The translations under genes and the position numbers were made by a program. Source: Oculina patagonica (taxonomy: Eukaryota). Taken from it: a stretch of DNA of 64,000 nucleotides. How positions within the stretch are numbered: the first letter of the stretch is position 1; the number at the start of each line of letters is the position of its first letter. Of the stretch, positions 44,501-61,663 are shown one piece after another. The notes under the pieces were generated by a model, which worked only from the letters and a program-made list of their open reading frames with translations, was not told the origin of the DNA and made no database searches. The stretch is from contig NC_135760.1 in the NCBI RefSeq assembly GCF_052425735.1, positions 18,228,001 through 18,292,000 of the forward strand. The letters are read 5' to 3'.

Positions 44501-46024
44501 AGCGGCACATACCCATATAGCATAATTATATAAGGTACATGTAGTTCACCCATCCCTAGAAACACCGGTAGACAAGCAGTTGGAATCCCAGTATTAATCC
44601 CACTGGCCACCAAAATTGGGTGGAATTAAGGATATAGCTAGGTCCGCAATGCAATTTACACAGTTCACTCAACACAGTTTTTGAAGAAAAAGTACTGTAG
44701 ACTGAGACTGTTTACAGTCTAAATCAAACATGTTTTTATTTGGATTCAGGCTACAAGCAAACACAACTGGTCAAAGACTCAAAGATTTAAACCTCAAGTA
44801 CACCAAACTAGTCTGCTCAACCTTAATACGAGCTGCTGAAACGGCAGATATCATAGCAAAGTATCTGCCAGATGTGCCAAGGGAGACATGTTGCATGTTA
44901 AGGGAAGGAGCACCTGTTGCTCCTGATCCCCCTTCCTCTTCAACCTGGAAACCAGTTAAAAAGGTCAGTGTAACATGTTCATAATTAATAAAAACCCTGC
45001 CATATTATAAAATGTATACTGTAAACCCCACTCTCTCTCTCTCTGATGGCCCCCCCCCCCCCCCATCTATTCTATAACAAGACAGCTCCACAGAAAGATA
45101 AAATCGTCTTTTTTCTGACTGAAAAGGTTTAGGTTGTGATAAAACAGTAGTCATGATAAATAGTTTATTTATGTTTTTGTCCCTGGCATTCTTCAGAACG
45201 TTTTCCGAGATGGCCCTCGCATTGAAGCTGCCTTCAGAAAATATATCCACAGAGCTGATGCTGATCAAGTAGGGGACAGTGTTGAAATTTATGTGTGCCA
45301 TGCAAATGTCATTAGATATTTTGTCTGCAGGTAAGGATTTGTATAATGTGTAGATAGTGCAATGTACATACCGGTATGTAAACCTTGCTCCAAAGGCAAG
45401 TACAAGATACATAGATTATTTGTGTGGTGCTATTTATGATAAAACAAATTAAGAAAATAAATTACCTTTATTCAGACACAGTAGTATTTAAAGCTAGAAG
45501 CTTTTGGGGCCATTAAGTTCCTGATTGAATTGATTTTTTTGTGAGGAGGAAAACTTGAGAACCCAGAAAAACCCTCCGCGCAAGGACGAGAGCCAAAAAC
45601 AAACTCAACCCACATATGAGGTCAGGTCCAGGATTTGAACCCAGACCACACTGATGGGAGGCGAGTGCTCTCACCACTGCACCATCCCTACTCCCTCCCT
45701 TCCCCTGCTCAATCTCAAGTAGAATAATTCAGCCTCGGCTCTAACCTGGACTGCTTGATCCAGAGTCCATGCAGTCAATCCAGTGTCCAGTCCTAACCAT
45801 TAGCCAACCATGCCTCCCATAAAGTAATTCAAAGTGTAAAAAATATTATTATTCCTGTTTGGTTTGCTGTTTATAGGGTTCTTCAGTTTCCACCAGAAGG
45901 CTGGCTTCGTATGAGCATAGGCCACTGTGGAATCACATGGGTAACAATCAGGCCAAGTGGGAGAGTGAGCCTAAGAAGAATGGGTGACACAGGCCATTTG
46001 CCCCCAGACCAGATGTCAGTATAG
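41532..46024 (+). CDS. PGAM5: Mitochondrial Ser/Thr phosphatase PGAM5, 4 exons
   Basis: Exons 41532-41908 (N-terminal hydrophobic anchor, [23 protein letters not shown]), 44750-44963 ([20 protein letters not shown]), 45197-45330 ([29 protein letters not shown]) and 45877-46024 ([11 protein letters not shown]...[15 protein letters not shown]). All phases are consistent. Confidence 0.96.
42846..43571. mobile_element. MITE with ~125-bp imperfect TIRs in PGAM5 intron 1
   Basis: 42846-42970 (TACTTTGGCCGCCCGCTTTGCGAAGTTTGTTGGGAAATTGGAAA...) is the reverse complement of ~43447-43571. Confidence 0.75.
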
Positions 46025-50220: not shown

Positions 50221-52445
50221 TTAACAATTCACCCTCAAAGATTCACTGAAACACTGACGCGAAAATAACACAACTACTATCAAGCCTTTGTGTGTCTCAA
50301 ACCATGTCTCAACTAGAGTTCGCGGCATAAACTAAAAGGAAACTTAAAGCTTTGGAGCTTAAAATGGCTTAATGATCTGCGACAAGATCTTCATAAGGAT
50401 CATTTGGTTCTAGTTCCTTAGTTACAGCTTCCACTATTTCTGCCATCTCAAAACCTTTCCTTGTCACATCGGGTTTGTTTGTGTACTTAAAACAGTTATA
50501 CTGTACTGTAAATTTGACTACTCAATTTGTAAACTGGCAACCCGGCATTTTTAACCTAGTGGTTATTTCGGGTTGTCAGATCTCCTAATCTTTAGCAATA
50601 AATTTATATAATAATACTGTATTTCAATTTAATGATAAGGAAATAAAGAGGATGTTGTTGTAAATATTTTGGACGCTTAAAAATTTCAGACGGTTTTATT
50701 TTCGGACACTTTTTTTGTCCGAAATTAAAATCGTCCGAAAAAATAGTAAAATAGTGCCCTGCCGATGCAAGAACATAACACACGACTCCGGCCGGGGTTC
50801 GAACCCGGTACTATTTTGGAAAAAATCATGCATTGCTTGGGATATCTCAAAATTTTATCTGACGTTAATATAGCATTGGAGTTCGCAGTGGCTGTTCAGA
50901 ATGGCAATAATTCAGGTGGTCACGAATGGGATTCAGTAAACTTTATAGTACCTTATCGCCAGTTTTTTTAAGATTAATTATTGTTGCCTTAGTTTTGGGT
51001 TGTAAGTGCGACTTCCTAGAATTATCAACCAGACAGCCGTACAAATGGAATGCACGTTTTCGCTCATATTTTGTCCATAGATAGGTCCTGGTGAGAAACT
51101 AAACGGACCGTAGTTAGTTTTACCTAATACATTTTCCTTTCGTAGAAATATGTCAAAAAAGATTTCGCCCCAATTTGGCTCAAAATCGACTTCCGGTTTG
51201 ACTGATTGTTTTGAAAATTTGATCGCCTCGCGCATTTTACTGCCGCTGTTTATGGATCTTTCAATAGTATTTATATTCTCTTTAGGTCTTGATTGTATAA
51301 CTGAGCGAAAAATAAAACAGTTCGAGATTAATTTTGAGCCTAGAATGGGGATAAAATGATAGGCAAAATTTGCAATTGGGTCGCGAGCGAAATTATGCAG
51401 TAAAACTTTGCCATTTTTTTCTATGTGCGATAACTTAAAATAACGTGAATATACATTTTATGGGTTAAAGAGACACCCATCTGATAGCATATCGTAAGAA
51501 ATCTCTGGGGAAAAGGTTTTAAGTGGCCCGCTTTGGCCTGTACTTATTACTAATTTCGCCGAAAATCTGCCGTTTTAGCGTGACAGGAATTACGTGACAA
51601 GGCTAGTAAAGCGCGAGGGAAATTATCTTTTTGAAACAAATACTTTCAAACAACCCAAGTATAAAAACGGTTATGTGCTGAACTCTTTGAAAAGGTAAAA
51701 GCAATAAGAGATTTTCCCTTTACCCGTTTTGAAATAATTGCGTGATCTTAACACGCTCTTTATCACAACATGCTAAACGGCTCGTCGGTAAGGTTTAACC
51801 TAGCGAAATTCTGTGTTAGTAGTTTTAAGCTGTTAACCCCTCGATCATTTTCAAAAGCCGGTCGTATAAATAGAAAGCATTCTCAGTTCAATTATAAAAC
51901 GTAACAACGAGTCAATATTGTTTGGTTTATTTCTTTACGTGATCTGAAGGGAACTAGCAAATAATTAAATTATAAGTATTTGCCGCCGGAGTGCAATGAT
52001 GTTGATTTTGTTCGTTGATGCGTTGTTGTTTCTTTTTGTATCAGATTGCCGATATTTTCCCAATTATTATCCTATAAGCGAAGCAAAAATATAAAGCAAA
52101 AAAATGTTGGCTAGAATTATTTACTAACAGGTATCAACACTGAAGGTATTACTGAGGACTATAAACACCTTTATGGTATAAGATCGAACAGAAAACATAC
52201 AATTGCCTTATAGCTTTTTAAGTTATATTCAGAGTTCTACGTTTTTTGCCCGAATAGTACATTTCAATGAACTGAAACTTCGGAAATGATTAGCGCCAGA
52301 ATTCAACGCAATATTTGGATCAGTCCTAAATAGATTTTACTTGCGATAAGCAAATTGTTAAATTAAATTAATTGTTAAATTAAGTTTGAAAACACGTCCT
52401 TATCCGACAATTCCTCACTTCAGTAAACACGACTCTTCGAACAAG

Positions 52446-55400
52446 ATGAATGCTTGTTGTTCTTTTAAGTCATTAGTTGGTGGTCAGTGCTCCTTTGATC
52501 GCAGAGACAGAAAGCAGTCAACGGAGATCGTCCCACTTTTATCGTGCACTAAAAATGTAGCACAACACAAGTCACTCTTTCAATTCCATGATGTGGAAAG
52601 TGAAATTGAGTTAATACTTGCTCGTGCGGCGATGTTTAACACTCCACAAAATGTCGACGTAATGACTGTTTGCCCATCACATCGCTCATCCCTTGGTCTC
52701 GGCTGGACAAGAGGAACCGAAAGATGTAGGGTCCCTCAAGATATATCTCTACATAAAATGGTGAGAGGAAAATATCCAAAAGCCGAAAGAGGGGTAAACA
52801 AGACCTTCTCGAAGAACGGGAAGAAGAACGGGACATTTGGTTCCCGTTGGATCAGGTATATATCGACTTCTCACTCGTGTTATCGCTTCTTGTCTTATAC
52901 AATACGTCTGATAGTTTCCTTCTGTTTGCATAAGGTATGTGCAGATCATGCAGGGAAATTTTGAGTTCAGCGTCCGAAGAAGAGAAGTTGTCAAAATTAG
53001 CAGCAAAGAACTCGCCTCCACTTGTCGACATAGATAACAAGGAAGAAGAAGTTGTTAGTCAAATGACAGAGTTGACATTCAGGGTAAGAAAACTGTGACA
53101 ATGATAAGCCTTTACTTAAAAGAAATCCATGGCGTTTTAAGCAAGTGTAAAATTTATTTATTCCGGACAGCAATGAGAAAATATATATAACAGGCATGCA
53201 CAGCACCTCTTGGGGGTGGGGGAAAGGGATACTTGGGCTTTCGAGTGACGGGGATGATCGAATGGGGGACACAATCAAACCTAGGGCTTACTTATCCTTA
53301 AAAGTTTCAGAATTAAAGGAGTAATAGTGTAACACAAAGAAAAAATGAAACAATTCACGATTAAGCATCAGAGCATGTTAAGAGCCTGTTTACATGAAAG
53401 ATTTGTTTTTAATTCAGCCCTCTTGTTATGATCTACAGTCAACTCTCACCTTACGGACACCCCGCTATAGCGGACACTCGATATTACGGACAAAATTCAG
53501 ATCCCCGCCGAAAGAGGTTTGACTGTAAATGACTCCCGCTATTACAGACTCTCGCCCGACCGCCCCCCCCCCCCCTGAGGGGGGTTACTCCCTCTTATGG
53601 CATAAAGGAGGAGGCTTCGCCCGAAAGGGGTACCTTTTTCATGCTTCAGGTATATATAAAAGGGTAGGGATTTCACAAGTTTTGGTACATGAAAGGGTAA
53701 AGACATCGGTCATTTAGGTTTTTAAAAGGGTCTTCAATTTAAATAATTATATTGAACAAACGCACCTTATAGCTTTATTTCTAAAATTTATTAAAAGCCA
53801 TGTAAAACTGACATCTAGAATTCCTGTTTTAGGCATATGTCATGCATGTGTTTTTTTGGTATATGAAAGGGATACCTTTTTTCAGTAAAAGGTATACAAA
53901 AGGGGTGCCTTTCTTGTCAATATGGTATATAAAAGGGTACTTTTTTGAGTAGCCCCCTTGGGATTCTCGCTATACCGAGCACTGAACGACGCCCCGAGCG
54001 TGTCCAGTAAAACGAGAGTTAACTCTACGTGGCAATAACATTTTGTAAAATGTAAATGTTGTTTTATAGTGGTCATGCACTTAGCTTCGAGATTGTCACT
54101 TTGTAAGTCTAAAAAATTTCAAACCCGAAAGTGTTCTCGCTGGGCTCAGCACAGAAATCCTTTGACAAATTTTCTAACAATGCCCCAGCAACACTTGATG
54201 TGCAGTGTTATTGTCAGCCTTCGGTATGGGTACAGCGATATACACTTACTTGAAAAAAATGAAAAATGAAAAGATAAGTTTGACCTACTGACTGATCGTT
54301 TGCTTGCTTGATTGATTGATTGACTGATGGATAATCTGACTGATTGACATGATGGCTCCAGTGTAACCACGTGACCAATATATCGCAAAACATAAATCGA
54401 AAATTTCGTTTCACAAAAATGTTTCAGCCGCCTCATTTTGATCGATTACTAAAGAAGGTTCAATCCCCCGCCATTCCGGTTGATCATAGGTTTATGACTA
54501 TTGGTCTTCATGTAGTTGTACGCGGCATTGCGCTTAGGGGCGTAAAATAGTAAAGTGGATTTATTTAAATTATCTCCCATTGCGTTTTTTAGGAAATCAG
54601 TACAGTAACAGACCAAAGTCATTTCACGAGTACCCCATTTACAGAGGCGAGGTCAAGCATGTTTTCACAAGCCGATACCCCTTTTGGAAGTCTGTATTTG
54701 CCTTCAGATACCGAAAGTCTTGATGACACCTGCCAAGACAGAACTCCTGTCGACAGGTCAAGATCTGCACTGAATGATTTTCTTGCGTCAAGAGACATAA
54801 GTCCTATTCGATCTTCTTTAAGGACAACCTGGGATGACGTCGGCGAAAGAACCAAACGTTACTATGTAAAGAAGGCGAGTGAGGCTGTAGCCGCCTCATT
54901 GGAAGTTATAGCTGGCGAAGATTCTGATAAATTGTGGGACAAACTGGTCTCTTCAAAGGCAATGAATCAGCATTTTCTCTCAACATCCTTAGAAACAGAA
55001 AAAGTCGATTCTGTTTTACTGGAATCTTTAGCAGAATGCTACAACAGTGCTACCCAGTGGGATACGCGTCGTCAGATATTGTCTATCATGGTTGACAAGA
55101 TCAGCTTTAAGTCTCTTCAAAGGTGGATTCCAAACCTCACACAGTATCGATTCAAGATTGCCAGACAGCATCTGCTGATCCATGGTAGAGGCTCTCCTGT
55201 TCCTAAACCTATCCAGAAGAGAATGTACGTTTCCCCGGAAATGGTTGACCACTTTATTTGTTTCATAACCAGTCAGCACATCATTCAAGATTTACCATTT
55301 GGACAGAAAAACCTTACTTTGAGTTCCGGTGAAGTGATCGCAGTACCCAATGTTATCAGGATGATGATTCCAGAACGTATAGCACAGCAATATCAAGAGT

Positions 55401-58128
55401 ACTGCAAGGAGTCAGGCATAACCTGCTTGAGCCGAAGCTCTTTGCTTCGAATTCTTGACGTCTGTTCTGCCTCCGTGAGGAAATCCTTACAAGGTCTGGA
55501 CTACATCACTGCTTCTGGCGCGAAAGCGTTTGAGGAACTTGAAATTGTGGCTGAGCGACTGGGTGAGCTTGGAATGGGTATGTCCTGGGCGAAACAAAGA
55601 AAGGAGCAACTGAAATTGGCCAAGCGTTACCTGAAAAGTGTCTTCACGGTAACGACAACAAATAACCCTTAAAACATTGCAACCCGGGGGGGGGGGGGGG
55701 TACTCCCTATAATGGCCTATACGGGGAGGCTCCGCCCTTTTTCAGGCTTCAGGTATATAAAAGGGTAGGGATTTCACAAGTTTAGGTATATGAAAGGGTG
55801 AGAAAATCTGTCATTTAGGTGTTTAAAAGGGCCTTTAATTAAAATATTTCGAACAGACGCAACTTATGGCTGTATCATTTAATTTTTTTTAGCGCTGCAT
55901 GAAATGACAATAAAACTTCCTGTTTTAAGTCTATGTGATGTCATGTAGGTATATGAAAGGGGTACCTTTTTTCAATAAAAGGTATATGAAAGGGGTGCCT
56001 TTTCTGTCAAAATGGTATATAAAAGGTTAAGGGGTCGGATCTCAGGGCGGAGCATCCCCGTATAAAACTTTTTGGAGTACCACCCCCCCCCCCCGGGCAT
56101 TGCAACAGCTTTGAGACTAACACGTGCTTGTTTTTATAGCGTAATTTCTCATACGATCCTCTTTGATTTTTTAAGGTACATGTTTCTGAGTCGTCGACTG
56201 TCCCAGACCATTGTAGATGTTTTGCGCTCAGTGATGCCAAATGTTCCGATTACCAGGGAGAGTGTAGTCATATCCATGATGGGGTGTGTGATCGTTGCAG
56301 CCTGGTGGAGGTGAGCATTGGAGAAATAGAAGACGCCCTTAAGCTAATTGCAACAGAAAGCGAAGAAATGGACGAGTTGACCTTTAACACTGAACAAGCA
56401 AGGCGTAGCATCAGTGCCGTGAAAGCTCACCTTCTTCGTGCAGTTAACCAAGATGAGGCCAGAGTCGATGTAATGGAAATGTTAGAGGAAAATTCTGTTT
56501 TCTTGGTCCAAGATTGGGCCATGAAGTTTCTTCCCAGAAAGTATAGAGAAAGTCAAAGCGACTGGTTTGCTAAGCGAGGGATACCTTGGCACATCACAGT
56601 GGCACTACAGCAGCGACCAAACCGACAAATCGAGACGATGGCATTCGTGCACATTTTTCAAGCTTGCGACCAGGACAGTCACTCAGTGCTTGGCATAATG
56701 GCGGATGTTCTCACAAAATTAAAGATTGGTATGCCAAACCTTGAATCAGTATTCTACAGACAGGACAACGCGGGGTGCTATCACTGTGCTTCGACCATTG
56801 TTGGTGCTAAAGTGGTAGCAGATAAAGCCGGTGTTACCTTAAAGAGAATGGATTTTTCAGATCCACAAGGTGGCAAGGGAGCATGTGACCGAAAAGCGGC
56901 GACCATTAAATCCCACATGCAAATCTACCTCAATGAAGGCAATGACATTGAAAATGCTGCTCAAATGAAGGCTGCCATCGAGTCTTTTGGTGGAGTTCCT
57001 GGTGTAGTTGTCACCTTGGCAGAAACGCCTCAGTTGCAAACGCAGAAAGCCGTCACATGGGAAGGTGTTAGTTTTGTTAACAACATCCAGTATGAAAGCG
57101 ATTGTTTGAGGGTGTGGAGGGCATACGGAATTGGCCAGGGAAAATTAATTCCTTGGAGCAAATTCCAGGTGACTGATAGCGATGGCGAACGTCACTTGCT
57201 TGTCGATATCGGAACTGATAATGAAAGGAGCACTCATTTGCTATTTGTCGATTTGAAACCTCGGAAGGTTAAATGCCCTGCAGAAGTTACCTCGTCTGAC
57301 GGCGATGATGACGGAAGTGCCAGCGACGAGGGAAACGCCAATTCTGGATTGTTTTCTTGTCCTGAAGAAGGTTGCATCATGACATATCAAAGATACTCCA
57401 GTCTTGAGCAACACCTTCAATGTGGAAAGCACAAACGTGCTTTGGAACAGGAGACACTTCTGGACAGAGTAATGCTAAGATATGCCTATGAGCTTGAAAA
57501 GGGTGTATCCAAAGTCGAGGAACTAGGCGATGTGGCGTGCCTTGGAAAAGATAGCAGTTGTGATGCTCAAAATCCTCCTATGTCCATGGGCTGGGCGCTC
57601 AAGAGTTCCTTTGTTGGGAAAAGGTTCAATTCCAATCAAAAAGATTACCTCATTAAGAAATTTGAGATAGGGCAAACAACTGGAAGAAAGCTTGACCCGG
57701 CTACTGTGTCCAAAGAAATGAGGACTGCCAAAGATTCCAATGGCAATCGTCTGTTCACATTCAGCGAATTCCTGACAACGCAGCAAATCCGGGGCTTTTT
57801 TTCCAGACTGGCTGCCAAACGAAGTGTTGATGTTGTGACCGAGGAAGACGAGGAAGAAGAGATCTGTGCGCGCCATGAAGAAGCGTTAAGTGAGATGCGC
57901 AGAGATGTGTCCAATTTCGTAGCTCTTCAGCATCCCATTATGCATGACACTTATAACATCTGCGAGCTTGCCTCCAGTGGCAAACTTGCAGCTACTTTTC
58001 GTGTTACCGTTTTGCGCGACATCTGCATCTTTCTAGGCATTGATGTTTCAAATGTCACGATAACCCGCAAGAAGCCTTACATCGATAAGCTTCAAGAGGT
58101 GGTGAAGTCTTGTACCTGCTACAAGTGA
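52446..58128 (+). CDS. Sola3-type DDD transposase with C2H2 zinc finger (~1188 aa if one frameshift is repaired); exons 52446-52855, 52935-53083, 54593-55648, 56176-58128
   Basis: Canonical GT-AG junctions. Motifs QDLPFG, ASVRKSLQGLDY, YLKS..|VHVS..DHCR.FALSD, VQDWAMKFLP.KYRESQSDWFAKRGIPWH, RQDNAGCYH and GKGACDR (three putative catalytic Asp), and CPEEGC-x12-H-x4-H finger. One extra base near 52836-52838 breaks the frame before LVPVGS|GMCRSCR. Confidence 0.85.
53436..54025. mobile_element. Tigger/pogo-type MITE in transposase intron 2, containing a nested CCCGG-family MITE (53556-53962)
   Basis: TA|CAGTCAACTCTCACCTTACGGACAC...GTGTCCAGTAAAACGAGAGTTAACTC|TA. The nested element is flanked by ACTCTCGC/ATTCTCGC. 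Confidence 0.75.
55683..56097 (+). mobile_element. CCCGG/G-run MITE family copy in transposase intron 3
   Basis: CCCGGG...GTACTCC / GGAGTACCACCC...CCCGGG termini with perfect 8-bp TSD CATTGCAA (55675-55682, 56098-56105). Confidence 0.9.
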
Positions 58129-58609
58129 AAGCCTACAAAGAAGCCGCATTTTCTCCGTCCAATGTTAAAGTATTGACAAATACGTTATCTCATCATTTAA
58201 AGAAGACCATTTTGTAACAGTATTAAGTATTAAGTAGAAGCTTTCTCGTTGTCTTTAAAATAGTTAAAAATATTAGCACCCTGCTCCACACTCCTTTCAG
58301 ATATTTTATCTTCCACAATCTGGTTGCCTTGACCCCACCCGGCTCCAGCCTTGTTTAAAAAGTACAAACTTTCAAGCTAAGCCCTGCTTAAAACAGGCTT
58401 AGAGCGTTAGAGGGGGGGGGGGGGGGAGGGCTTTCACAATGAAATATCACCCAAATGCGTCAGGAAACGCTATGTGTAGACAGCAAAAGGGGAACAAAGG
58501 GGACGCCAAAGAAGCGGTGAAGAAGGTGGGCCTTTCCCTTCCTATAAGAGGGATGGGATGTGGAGTCTAGTAGGTACTGCTAAAAAAGCTATTTTTCTCC
58601 GCTTTATCA

Positions 58610-58793
58610 ACAGCGAGGTAACATGGCTACAAATATAATGTGTTTTTAATATGAAAGACTTATTGGCAATATCTAGCGATATTGGTGCTTCCCATGTTAT
58701 GATCATGATAACTTGACCCAAAAGAAACCTTACATCGATAAGCTTCAAGGGGTAATGAAGTCTGGTACCTGCTTCAAGTGAAAACCGGCAAAG
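58610..58793 (+). pseudogene. Degenerate duplicate of the transposase 3' end
   Basis: AAGAAACCTTACATCGATAAGCTTCAAGGGGTAATGAAGTCTGGTACCTGCTTCAAGTGAAAACC (~58722-58786) matches AAGAAGCCTTACATCGATAAGCTTCAAGAGGTGGTGAAGTCTTGTACCTGCTACAAGTGAAAGCC (~58069-58133). Confidence 0.8.
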
Positions 58794-61663
58794 TTCGTGC
58801 TTTACATACACGTAGGTTTTCGCAATATTTTAAAACTCCGCTCTGTAAGCCCTTTAAACCCCCCCCCCCCCGTCCTTCCCGGCCACTGATATGCCACAGG
58901 CTCGTTACAATAATCCCACCTACGAATTTGTAGAAAAGTTTTGCATTTAAAACAATGTTGATTTCCTTATGGAACTGAAACCGCTTTATGTGGACAGCAG
59001 GATGGGAGGTGGGCATTTGAGTCTAGTTGGCACTGATTTTAGGTGAAAGTAGAGTTGAAAATACTTGGCAATTTTCAGTGATCTATACTAGAACAGAAAT
59101 ATTACTAGATCTAAAAATATCCCTACAATGATCATGCATGAACAAAAGGAGTGAAAGAAGGGACATCTATAAAAGTATGCCTAGAAAGGCATACTTTGTT
59201 TCCAATATTCCCGGAACATTGTGTGCTAATCCATGTTACCTTTTATAGTTGATTCCGTGCCAAAGCTAAACGCTGTGAATTCTCTATCTAGCCAAAAGAT
59301 TTGAACTGCTAGCAGATCCTTTTATAATACTTTCATATTGTTGTAAGTGACAGTTAATTTCACCATAAAAGTTGTAACAAATTGAAGTGTGAGAAATCAT
59401 TGTAAGTTGTTTAGTTACGCTATTAAATCTGCCAAGTATAAAAGGAGCGACAAAAATTATCATTTCCCTTGTAGCAGAACGCCCTGGTCACAAACTCTGT
59501 CATAAGTGGTGCAATAGGAAAGAAAAAAATCCTAACTAAGCCCTTTTGAATTCTTCTGAATTACTTTAATGAAAAGTAGACAAAGCACGTACATTTGCCT
59601 GGTTCTGAATTTCAGCTGAAGAACACTTAACAGCACAGCCACTCGCGATATTGGTATAAAACAAGTAAAAGTTTCCTTTCCATTTACATTTGGCATGTGA
59701 CATCTATCTTTTTCGTGTATTTTAAAATGATTAGATTGTTTAAAATACAGGAAATCGTGAAACTGTCAGCGGGTATTGTGACAAGCAGTGTCACGCAATG
59801 ATTTACATTTTTTCTGATTTACGGCAAAACTAGTGATAAACAAAGGCCAAAGCGGGCCACTAAAAACCTTTCCCCCAGAGATTTTTTTAAATATACTATT
59901 AGATTAATGTCTAGTTAACCCATAAAAATTGTTTTTACGATATTTTAGGTTATCGCACATAGAAAAAAATGGCAGAGTTTTACTGCATAATTTCGCTCGC
60001 TACTCATTTGCAAATTTTGCCTTTGGATTTATCCCCGTTTCAGGCTAAAAATAAATCTCGATTTGTTTTATTTTTCACTCAGTCATACACTAAATACCTA
60101 AAGACATTATAAATGTTATTGAAATATCAATAAACAGCTGCAGTATAACGCACGAGGCGATCAAACTTTCAATAAAATCAGTCAAACCGGAAGTTGTTTT
60201 TGGGCCCAATTTGAGGCAAAATCTTTTTTTGCATATTTCTACGAAAGAAAGCTATATTAGGAAAAACTAACTGCAGTCCGTTTAGTTTCTCACTAGGGCC
60301 TATCTATGGGCAAAATATGAGCGAAATCGATTTTTCCAATTTGTGCCAGGGAAAGGCGATATTAGTCGATTTTTGGAGAAAGCCGCACGTAAAAGTCCAA
60401 CCAGCTCTTAAGGACGGACCATTATTTTTTTAGAGGAGGGGGTATGAAAAATATTGAAAAAATTGTTAGCAGGGCCTAGAAAGACAAAAAAAATTGTTTG
60501 CAAACACGATATGTATAACAAAAATAGTGTGCATTTCCAAAAAAAGAATGTTTGCAGAGGTGCATTAACTAAAAAGAAAAGTTTGAAGAGGAAAATTTTT
60601 CATCCCCCCCCCCCCCTTCGAGAAAATAATCTGACCGAACGTGCCGTGTTTATTCTTTGATTGACGGAAAAATGTGGATAAACTGAAGAAGTTGTGAAAA
60701 CGTCTAGCTGTTAGCTATGACAGCCACGATATTATTTTTATTGTACAAAAAATACAACTCCGGAAAGAATTTACTGTTGTTGCAGTATACGTACCTTTTT
60801 ACTTACTTTATATATGTCTTGATGAAAGACAGAAGAACAAAAATGCTAAGAAGTGTTATGATTCTAAGTGTGAAAATTTAATAACATCTTTTCCCAAAGA
60901 TTCTTCAAAACAACAAGAAACTCTTGGCAACTGCATTTCGCTGAAAAAAATTCAGTTCAGCATTTTCATGCAAATTTAATTTCCGATAAGAATTTTTTTT
61001 TAAATACTTTATTTATAGAGGGTAACTCCAGGCAGTGAATTTGTATCGACAAAGTTTTTAGTCAGTCAATAGACTTTTATGCCGTGAAATTCAGGGAATA
61101 ATATTACTAATTCATGATTATTCGTAGAACATTACTGCTATGGCTCTATCACTCTCTTTTTCTATCTTTATTATTGTTATTGTTTTTTTATAATTTTATG
61201 TTTTTAATTTTCATCATTCTATTTTAGTGTGTAGTTGCGAAACTGGTTATAAAGCTGTACAATGTCATTTTGTCAAAACCTGTATTTCGCCTGGCCACTC
61301 GCTAGAGTATACAGCGTTTATTCCAAGTGTTTCATAAATAAGTCGGTTTTTTAAGATTTTTGTCTTTTCGTGCACTCGATGATGCGAAAACCCCTTATTA
61401 ATAAGTGGCGTTAAAAAGCTGACACGGAAAAACTTTATGCAAATTTTGTTTAATCATCACAGGCTTTCAATCCTGCTGAATCTATTCCCTGTATTTGTTT
61501 GTTCAACGTGTCGGTGTATGTGCATATTTGAGTGAGAAGCTTTTAAACGATAAATTGATGAATATGTTTCGTTTTGATTTGTCGTTTCAAAGACGAAAAC
61601 TGCCATTTGAGGCAGTTAACAGTTGAAGTATAAGCATGTAAATTTCAAATTACGAACGCAAAA

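Follow-up and report, generated by a model that had tools for sequence, protein, structure and literature searches.

We found that the window, by which we mean the whole stretch of 64,000 nucleotides of Oculina patagonica analysed here (contig NC_135760.1, positions 18,228,001 to 18,292,000), contains one inserted and slightly damaged copy of an autonomous cut-and-paste DNA transposon of the Sola3 type, a reading to which we assign a probability of about 0.9. The element belongs to a young multi-copy family of Oculina patagonica. It is an ordinary mobile element and not a host-captured gene, and it represents a new family within the known Sola3 group. The copies and their target-site duplications (TSDs) point to transposition as the origin of the insertion.

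Boundaries and target site of the element

We set the ends of the element by comparison with its paralogues, 10 further copies in the same genome that are 97-99% identical and lie on 8 chromosomes with unrelated flanks. In the paralogue alignment, matching to the window ceases at 51003 and 60392 in all other copies, which delimits the element as given in Table 1. A preliminary description had placed the ends at 50990 and 60407, outside the element and about 16-19 bp too wide. The clean CTC|TTAA that it saw at the right end belongs to the flank, 15 bp past the true end. Nor is the left terminus degenerate, as had been thought: it reads GTGCGACTTCC, and its counterpart in the right arm reads GTGCGGCTTTCTCC. 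The terminal asymmetry and the GAG..CTC ends were thus a product of mis-set boundaries; the actual termini are GTG...CAC and are symmetrical (5'-GTGCG...CGCAC-3').

We found matching or near-matching 4-bp TSDs at nine insertions: TTAA on both sides in 6 copies, TTAA/TAAA in 1, ATAA/ATAA in 1 and GTAA/GTAA in the window copy. On insertion, the window element thus duplicated a 4-bp GTAA site; the usual target of the family is TTAA. A search with the left flank for an empty site or a haplotig found no empty or polymorphic site for the window insertion; its matches were this locus alone and unrelated repeats in 50300-50740.

Table 1. Coordinates of the element and its parts in the window.
Feature	Position	Strand	Remarks
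Whole element	51006..60388	+	9383 bp, 5'-GTGCGAC...GCCGCAC-3'; ends are where 10 paralogous copies stop matching
Left TSD, GTAA	51002..51005		same 4 bp at 60389-60392
Right TSD, GTAA	60389..60392		matches left 4 bp
Left TIR	51006..51567	+	~562 bp; 79-81% identical to right arm in every copy; ~97.6% between copies
Right TIR	59816..60388	-	~573 bp; ~97.9% identical between copies
Exon 1, N-terminal Cys/His-rich domain	52446..52855	+	410 nt here, 412 nt in 9 other copies
Intron 1	52856..52934	+	79 nt, GT..AG, phase 1; removal gives open 1189-codon frame in 2 copies
Exon 2, contains CxxC motif	52935..53083	+	aligns with long-ORF start of intronless relatives
Intron 2, packed with high-copy repeats	53084..54592	+	run X6 contig joins 53083 to 54593, GT..AG ends
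Exon 3, helical domain (352 aa) with no significant structural match	54593..55648	+	
Intron 3, phase 0, nested MITE inside	55649..56175	+	spliced joint in runs X1, X2, X6
Exon 4, 650 aa + stop	56176..58128	+	Zn motif, long helix, catalytic core, C2H2 finger, helical C-terminus
RNase H-like catalytic core (predicted)	56494..56934	+	Asp codons 56512-14 (D113), 56764-66 (D197), 56887-89 (D238)
C2H2 zinc finger, C-x4-C-x12-H-x5-H	57358..57432	+	conserved Cys/His in exon-4 protein alignment

A family with imperfect terminal inverted repeats

The long inverted repeats noticed at the outset are indeed present. Without gaps, 51043-51567 matches 59816-60341 at 83% identity, and gapped alignment carries the terminal inverted repeats (TIRs) all the way to the ends of the element at 51006 and 60388. 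Left and right arms are 79-81% identical in nine of nine copies measured, but the same arm compared from copy to copy is 97.6-97.9% identical. Imperfect TIRs are therefore a trait of the family and not the result of local decay. The left-right difference of about 20% goes back to the ancestor of the family.

Two accounts of these arms had been offered earlier, and the one in which imperfect TIRs are an inherent property of the family is borne out, with the same left-right differences recurring in every copy. The other saw a transposase gene that had been immobilised or domesticated and that host purifying selection maintained while its TIRs decayed in place. The long ORF, TIRs that are just ~80% alike and a pooled pN/pS between copies of 0.34 could be read in its favour. 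A ratio below 1 is equally expected of active transposable element lineages, and a value of 0.34 is what selection of lineages for a working transposase from one jump to the next would produce. Moreover, the left-right TIR differences are common to all copies and the window copy is privately frameshifted, with a stop at codon 171. In a genome search, 20 or more left ends were ≥95% identical and a further 20 or more were 86-88% identical; the near-identical copies, no fewer than 20, occupy different loci and have TSDs of their own. Such copies with the same imperfect TIRs had been named beforehand as evidence against domestication, which therefore fails and which we regard as extremely improbable.

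Gene structure and the frameshift in the window copy

The mobile element carries a four-exon gene, as first described. With GT..AG splicing, the frame of 1189 codons is open in 2 copies, both on C12, and all remaining copies, that of the window included, have stops, frameshifts or deletions. The three proposed junctions fared differently in contigs from runs that are only presumed to be RNA. Introns 2 and 3, with GT..AG ends, are absent from contigs of 3 of these RNA-like runs, whereas intron 1 is kept in 3 contigs and no contig with intron 1 spliced was seen. The position of intron 1 is conserved in distant families. Contigs from other samples that encode close homologues are genomic fragments starting within the intron and are uninformative on splicing.

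The introns themselves contain repeated DNA. Word depth within intron 2 reaches thousands, and the MITE in intron 3, at about 55684-56097, is flanked on both sides by CATTGCAA(C); its empty site is present in a copy on C6.

The preliminary description credited this locus with ~1188 codons and no in-frame stop, which is false for the window copy. Compared with the other copies, its exon 1 has a private 2-bp deletion together with 6 clustered substitutions at 52815-52823. The spliced coding sequence is consequently 3568 nt long, not a multiple of 3, and the first stop after the frameshift falls at codon 171. The exon 1 donor at 52856 was correctly placed in the first reading, yet the frame stays broken, and the window copy has no alternative in-phase exon 1 donor with a good consensus. 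Given this frameshift, mobilisation of the window copy probably depends on transposase made by intact copies.

It could be argued that a functional product still arises from the window copy, for example an N-truncated protein starting at the exon 2 Met (52937) and acting as a transposase or a regulator. Exons 2-4 are open in the window copy, and the retention of intron 1 in 3 contigs would favour downstream initiation. Against this, distant families retain the exon 1 domain at identities as low as 29%, a sign that it is probably required. In addition, the contigs show the TT of the family and not the window deletion, and no read can be assigned specifically to the window copy. We judge such a product to be unlikely.

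Domains of the transposase

The Asp residues of QDWAMK, QDNAGCYH and GKGACDR, singled out earlier as putative catalytic motifs, are D113, D197 and D238 in exon-4 numbering (D652, D736 and D777 in the full 1189-aa protein). All three are invariant in 27 homologues, which agrees with their predicted catalytic role. A structure model of the core has RNase H topology, with the first Asp on beta-1, the second where beta-4 ends and the third on the helix that follows beta-5. The top Foldseek matches of the core are retroviral integrase cores (E ~1e-5 to 1e-4).

The C2H2 finger is likewise upheld by conservation: C395 and H413 are invariant, and C400 and H419 are conserved at ≥90% (exon-4 numbering). 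The helical C-terminal block is seen in the structure model. The exon 1 protein is 29-56% identical in other families of the same genome. A fold search with the exon 3 domain gave no match at E 0.001 or better, and a feature search of a protein atlas gave only cnidarian clusters without names.

In intact copies, the gene encodes a 1189-aa transposase. Its N-terminal part is Cys/His-rich and is followed by a helical domain, the RNase H-like DDD core, the C2H2 finger and a C-terminus that is again helical. This protein would bind the ~565-bp imperfect TIRs, cut the element out at its conserved GTGCG ends and reinsert it at NTAA sites.

Possible current activity and use of the family

The family may still transpose in Oculina patagonica. 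Two open-ORF copies that have intact ends and TSDs, and contigs without introns 2 and 3 in several runs, are consistent with this, and we hold it as a tentative proposal with somewhat less than an even chance. If the family is active, it would be, to our knowledge, the first case of a Sola3 element shown directly to be active at present. It would also provide a TTAA-targeting transposon that is mechanistically distinct from piggyBac, and the retention of intron 1 might work as a splicing-based switch.

Sola3 is among the least studied of the cut-and-paste superfamilies and is without a Pfam model. The locus reveals neither a new kind of system nor a host gene. Together with its paralogues, it does define a fully delimited autonomous family, for which the exact termini, the preferred target, the structure of the gene, its conserved domains and the candidate catalytic residues are given. 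Such a family is of use for the annotation of transposable elements in coral genomes, where gene predictors now break the transposase up into individual 'hypothetical proteins', and its natural intact copies are on hand for studies of Sola3 transposition.

Comparison with known superfamilies

We compared the core with the Sola rows in the supplement of Majorek 2014 (E.13 for Sola3, E.10 for Sola1 and E.12 for Sola2). It matches Sola3-1_HM and C. remanei CRE_08425 block by block (for example FL..DW..K..P...E.QSD, R.DNAGCYH and FS..QGGK), with ~36-56% of residues identical in the 3 core blocks, as counted by eye over ~125 residues. The Sola1 and Sola2 rows bear other motifs. The earlier Sola3 call is thus supported by the core motifs, the modelled RNase H-like DDD fold, the 4-bp TSD and the lack of a Pfam piggyBac domain.

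Sola transposases are of the DDD type, and the elements carry 4-bp TSDs and TIRs of 11-1124 bp and measure 2-9 kb or more (PMC10741241). The TIRs (~562/573 bp) and the 9383-bp length found here both fall within this range. Their termini are described as variable (PMC10741241). The reference for the Sola3 group is Bao, Jurka and Kapitonov 2009, as cited in PMC10741241 and PMC4455052. In the papers covered, a literature search found no statement of a GAG...CTC rule or of a TTAA target for Sola3. The family described here prefers TTAA, and its termini are GTG...CAC as against the GAG...CTC given for Sola3 in the preliminary description.

As an alternative to Sola3, we also considered piggyBac and Kolobok, two other superfamilies that target TTAA. 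Both produce TTAA TSDs (PMC9587614), like the 4-bp, TTAA-preferring duplications of this family. The likeness to piggyBac further includes occasional NTAA sites and a DDD triad, but piggyBac termini are CCC...GGG (here GTGCG...CGCAC). Pfam searches with all exons and the full-length intronless relatives, at E up to 10, returned nothing meaningful, neither DDE_Tnp_1_7 nor any other transposase family. The second and third Asp have only 40 residues between them, too few for this compact core to hold a large insertion domain there. Kolobok shares the TTAA TSD and an occurrence in cnidarians, but has RR...YY termini (PMC9587614), unlike the GT...AC found here. With the motifs fitting the Sola3 rows, we consider either superfamily very improbable.

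Within Sola3, the family differs from known elements in its GTGCG...CGCAC termini and in TIRs that are only ~80% alike. In the Sola3 motif GKDxCDR, the first Asp is replaced by Gly. Deeper Sola3 lineages of the same genome are without introns 2 and 3, whereas the window family has 3 introns; for the intronless relatives L050-L052, no TIR ends were found within 8 kb. In other respects the element resembles Sola3-1_HM of Hydra and CRE_08425: the core motifs, the DDD triad on an RNase H fold, the 4-bp TSD, the long TIRs, the large size of the element and a transposase of ~1000-1200 aa are all shared, and Sola3-1_HM, as here, has a cnidarian host.

Element boundaries and terminal repeats

Aligned whole to the window, every complete copy of the element found elsewhere in the genome begins to match at 51003 and stops at 60392. 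Lined up at their left ends, the copies read flank + TTAA + GTGCGACTTCC..., and at their right ends ...GGAGAAAGCCGCAC + TTAA + flank, with flanks unrelated among copies on either side. Seven copies carry TTAA on the left; six of these repeat it on the right and the seventh has TAAA. One C7 copy has ATAA at both ends, and the window copy GTAA. The first base of NTAA thus co-varies between the two sides; the target-site duplication (TSD) is 4 bp long, and the element proper lies between its two copies (Table). The two ends of the element are symmetrical: the left one reads GTGCGAC and the right one, once reverse-complemented, GTGCGGC. The asymmetry of the preliminary description was a boundary error: its degenerate left terminus began 16 bp too early, and its CTC/TTAA right terminus near 60407 is flanking DNA beyond the end set by the other copies.

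The long inverted repeats reported there were recovered by a repeat finder as two paired blocks. In nine copies, the left arm is 79-81% identical to the reverse-complemented right arm, while the same arm compared copy to copy is 97.6% (left) or 97.9% (right) identical. The differences between arms are therefore older than the amplification of the family. Of the two explanations offered earlier, purifying selection on an immobilised or domesticated transposase and a family with intrinsically asymmetric terminal inverted repeats (TIRs), the second is borne out: imperfect TIRs are intrinsic to the family, and the ends of the window locus are not eroding.

On the left, only about 260 bp beside the insertion are unique; positions 50300-50740 hold two other dispersed repeats (dozens of copies, 82-95% identity). 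The open frame at 44730-44984 (+) resembles one exon from a histidine phosphatase gene of the PGAM5 type, which agrees with the earlier placing of the element downstream of PGAM5.

Features of the element and related loci (window positions unless stated; X1, X2 and X6 are sequencing runs guessed to be RNA)
Feature	Location	Strand	Description
Whole element	51006-60388		9383 bp; ends of paralogous-copy matches and co-varying TSD
TSD, GTAA	51002-51005; 60389-60392
Inverted repeat, outer	51043-51185; 60199-60341		83% identity
Inverted repeat, inner	51155-51567; 59816-60228		83% identity
Exon 1	from ATG 52446	+	donor at 52856
Intron 1	52856-52934	+	79 nt
Exon 2	52935-53083	+
Intron 2	53084-54592	+	GT..AG; joint seen in X6 contig
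Exon 3	54593-55648	+	C-terminal residues ...RYLKSVFT
Intron 3	55649-56175	+	GT..AG, phase 0; joint seen in X1, X2, X6
MITE in intron 3	55684-56097		~414 bp; G/C-run termini
MITE inverted ends	55677-55738; 56044-56105		62 nt
Exon 4	56176-58128	+	N-terminal residues VHVSE...
C2H2 finger	57358-57432		C-x4-C-x12-H-x5-H; conserved
D113	exon-4 protein		beta-1 of model
D197	exon-4 protein		end of beta-4 of model
D238	exon-4 protein		helix following beta-5 of model
Deeper Sola3 lineage ORF	L050 2743-5892	-
Deeper Sola3 lineage ORF	L051 1464-4838	+
Deeper Sola3 lineage ORF	L052 2963-6139	-

Gene model and splicing

Three long open frames lie between the inverted repeats on the + strand. The exon register is fixed by deeper Sola3 lineages of this genome (33-37% identical), in each of which introns 2 and 3 are absent and one ORF runs for 1049-1124 aa; the exon 3/exon 4 junction matches the relatives' RYLK..F..HV. 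In the runs guessed to be RNA, intron 3 is absent from contigs of X1, X2 and X6, and intron 2 from X6, with exact model joints and GT..AG ends. For intron 1 the run contigs gave no sign of splicing: all three that cross it read through, one of them seemingly cut at the exon-2 donor. Such retention may reflect inefficient or regulated splicing, or merely DNA in the runs. Of the three junctions singled out for an RNA check, those of introns 2 and 3 are thus supported and that of intron 1 is not.

In nine other copies exon 1 is 412 nt long; it ends in phase 1, and its junction with exon 2 reads ...HLVPVGS-G-MCRSCRE.... The full model yields an entirely open 1189-codon frame in two C12 copies (near 19.598 Mb and 19.121 Mb, with different flanks). 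Exon 1 is genuine coding sequence: its 137 residues share 44-56% identity with open frames lying upstream of further families in this genome, and 29% (E = 2.7e-12) with a segment that precedes the long L052 ORF. Both this segment and exon 1 end in ...PVGS, and the position of intron 1 is thus old.

The window copy had been described as almost intact, with no in-frame stop. At 52815-52823, however, it has a 2-bp deletion and six clustered substitutions relative to all nine other copies and the contigs of three runs; the altered bases look as if they had been copied in as a patch from the adjoining AAGAACGGG. Its spliced coding sequence is frameshifted (3568 nt), with the first stop at codon 171.

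Exon 1 is kept upstream in at least L052 among the deeper lineages. Intron 3 (327-961 nt) is common to families 43-49% identical and, like intron 2, missing from the deeper lineages, so intron content has changed within the Sola3 clade, by gain or by loss. Intron 2 consists almost entirely of high-copy repeats (53200-54400, word depths in thousands), and at 53633-53936 it shares about 80% identity with positions 55736-56026 of the intron-3 MITE. A duplicated CATTGCAA(C) bounds this MITE on both sides. It is missing from two more divergent C6 copies, and one C6 copy, L025, has the empty site (a single CATTGCAAC, intron of 104 nt); the MITE thus inserted into this intron in a master copy, which kept transposing. 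In many cnidarian assemblies, exon 3 (~340 aa) and exon 4 (~640 aa) are predicted as separate "hypothetical proteins" (database hits P0001-P0240), and some are fused to host genes, for example P0098, which has a Wnt domain, and P0117, which bears the name SURP/G-patch.

Copies in the genome

A six-frame search of the 529-Mb assembly, queried with the largest ORF, recovered ten more copies, spread over eight chromosomes and 97-99% identical in amino acids, together with dozens of relatives at 33-49%. The left 599 bp, used as query, matched at least 20 ends at ≥95% identity; a second group, also of at least 20 ends, stands at 86-88%. Both counts are lower bounds with 40 candidates scored. The second group represents an older subfamily (for example C10:14519079-14519674 and C7:23641277-23641872), whose exon-1 remnants are full of stops.

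A preserved ORF had been read as possible domestication. That reading is refuted: at least 20 near-identical copies sit at different loci with TSDs of their own, the copies measured show the same imperfect TIRs, and the window copy is frameshifted. Apart from the two open C12 copies, the others carry nonsense mutations, frameshifts or large deletions, a mixture usual for a young transposon family. Pooled pN/pS between copies is 0.34 for exons 3-4 (range 0.12-1.0), which is consistent with selection that maintains transposase function in lineages from one jump to the next and with inserted copies then decaying neutrally.

Protein fold and proposed mechanism

The exon-4 protein, modelled with AlphaFold2 (26 homologues, mean pLDDT 75.8), shows the RNase H order beta1-beta2-beta3-alpha-beta4-alpha-beta5-alpha. 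The three putative catalytic Asp proposed earlier, D113, D197 and D238, fall on this fold and are invariant across the homologue alignment. The best PDB matches (Foldseek) are retroviral integrase catalytic cores, with E from 3e-5 to 1e-3. The C2H2 finger and the helical C-terminal block also hold up, the latter as the last 170 residues of the model. Exon 4 starts with a Cys/His cluster (DHCR...C.H.H...CDRC) followed by a long helix. From the conserved Cys and His of exons 1-2 (CSF..C, CPxHR, C, CxxC), we infer a domain that binds DNA in a zinc-dependent manner. In exon 3 the domain is helical apart from one beta-hairpin, and the fold search gave no significant structural match.

The family has inserted repeatedly, with 4-bp NTAA duplications, and its termini are conserved. 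Its RNase H-like core holds three invariant Asp, and contigs of the presumed RNA runs include transcripts without introns 2 and 3. The transposase would bind the long imperfect TIRs, cut at the GTGCG ends and integrate at TTAA-like sites through staggered 4-bp cleavage; the window copy would rely on transposase from intact copies.

Comparison with known superfamilies

Pfam returned no match for any exon or for full-length relatives, and so no piggyBac domain either. Majorek et al. 2014 (PMC3985635) give, in their supplement, rows that cover the RNase H core of Sola1, Sola2 and Sola3. Compared by eye and unscored, the window protein agrees with the Sola3 rows block by block.

RNase H-core blocks of the window protein and two Sola3 rows
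Block	Window	Sola3-1_HM	C. remanei CRE_08425
1	FLVQDWAMKFLPRKYRESQSDWFAKRGIPWHITV	FWLKDYCQKVLPSKFREGQKEYFGKKGMSLHVDI	FLTMDWSQKVIPMQSLEPQSDFYGKSGISVHVTN
2	VFYRQDNAGCYH	YAKSDNASSYH	HLRSDNAGCYH
3	TLKRMDFSDPQGGKG	QLKRYDYNEPCRGKD	LSFTFSEAQGGK

By eye, the Sola1 and Sola2 rows differ, with the motifs FDLEK / SDNCGGQ and GDFAENYT / TDGCAGQ. Sola elements are DDD transposons that duplicate 4 bp of target, vary in their termini, have TIRs of 11-1124 bp and measure 2-9 kb or more (PMC10741241). Kolobok also makes TTAA duplications, but its termini are RR...YY (PMC9587614), whereas those here are GT...AC. The hAT, P, Kolobok and piggyBac transposases have a large insertion domain, which the window core lacks, since 40 residues part the second and third Asp. 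The Sola3 assignment of the preliminary description therefore stands on the by-eye match of the core rows, the three-Asp RNase H core, the 4-bp TSD and the lack of a Pfam piggyBac match, and the element represents a new family of the known Sola3 kind.
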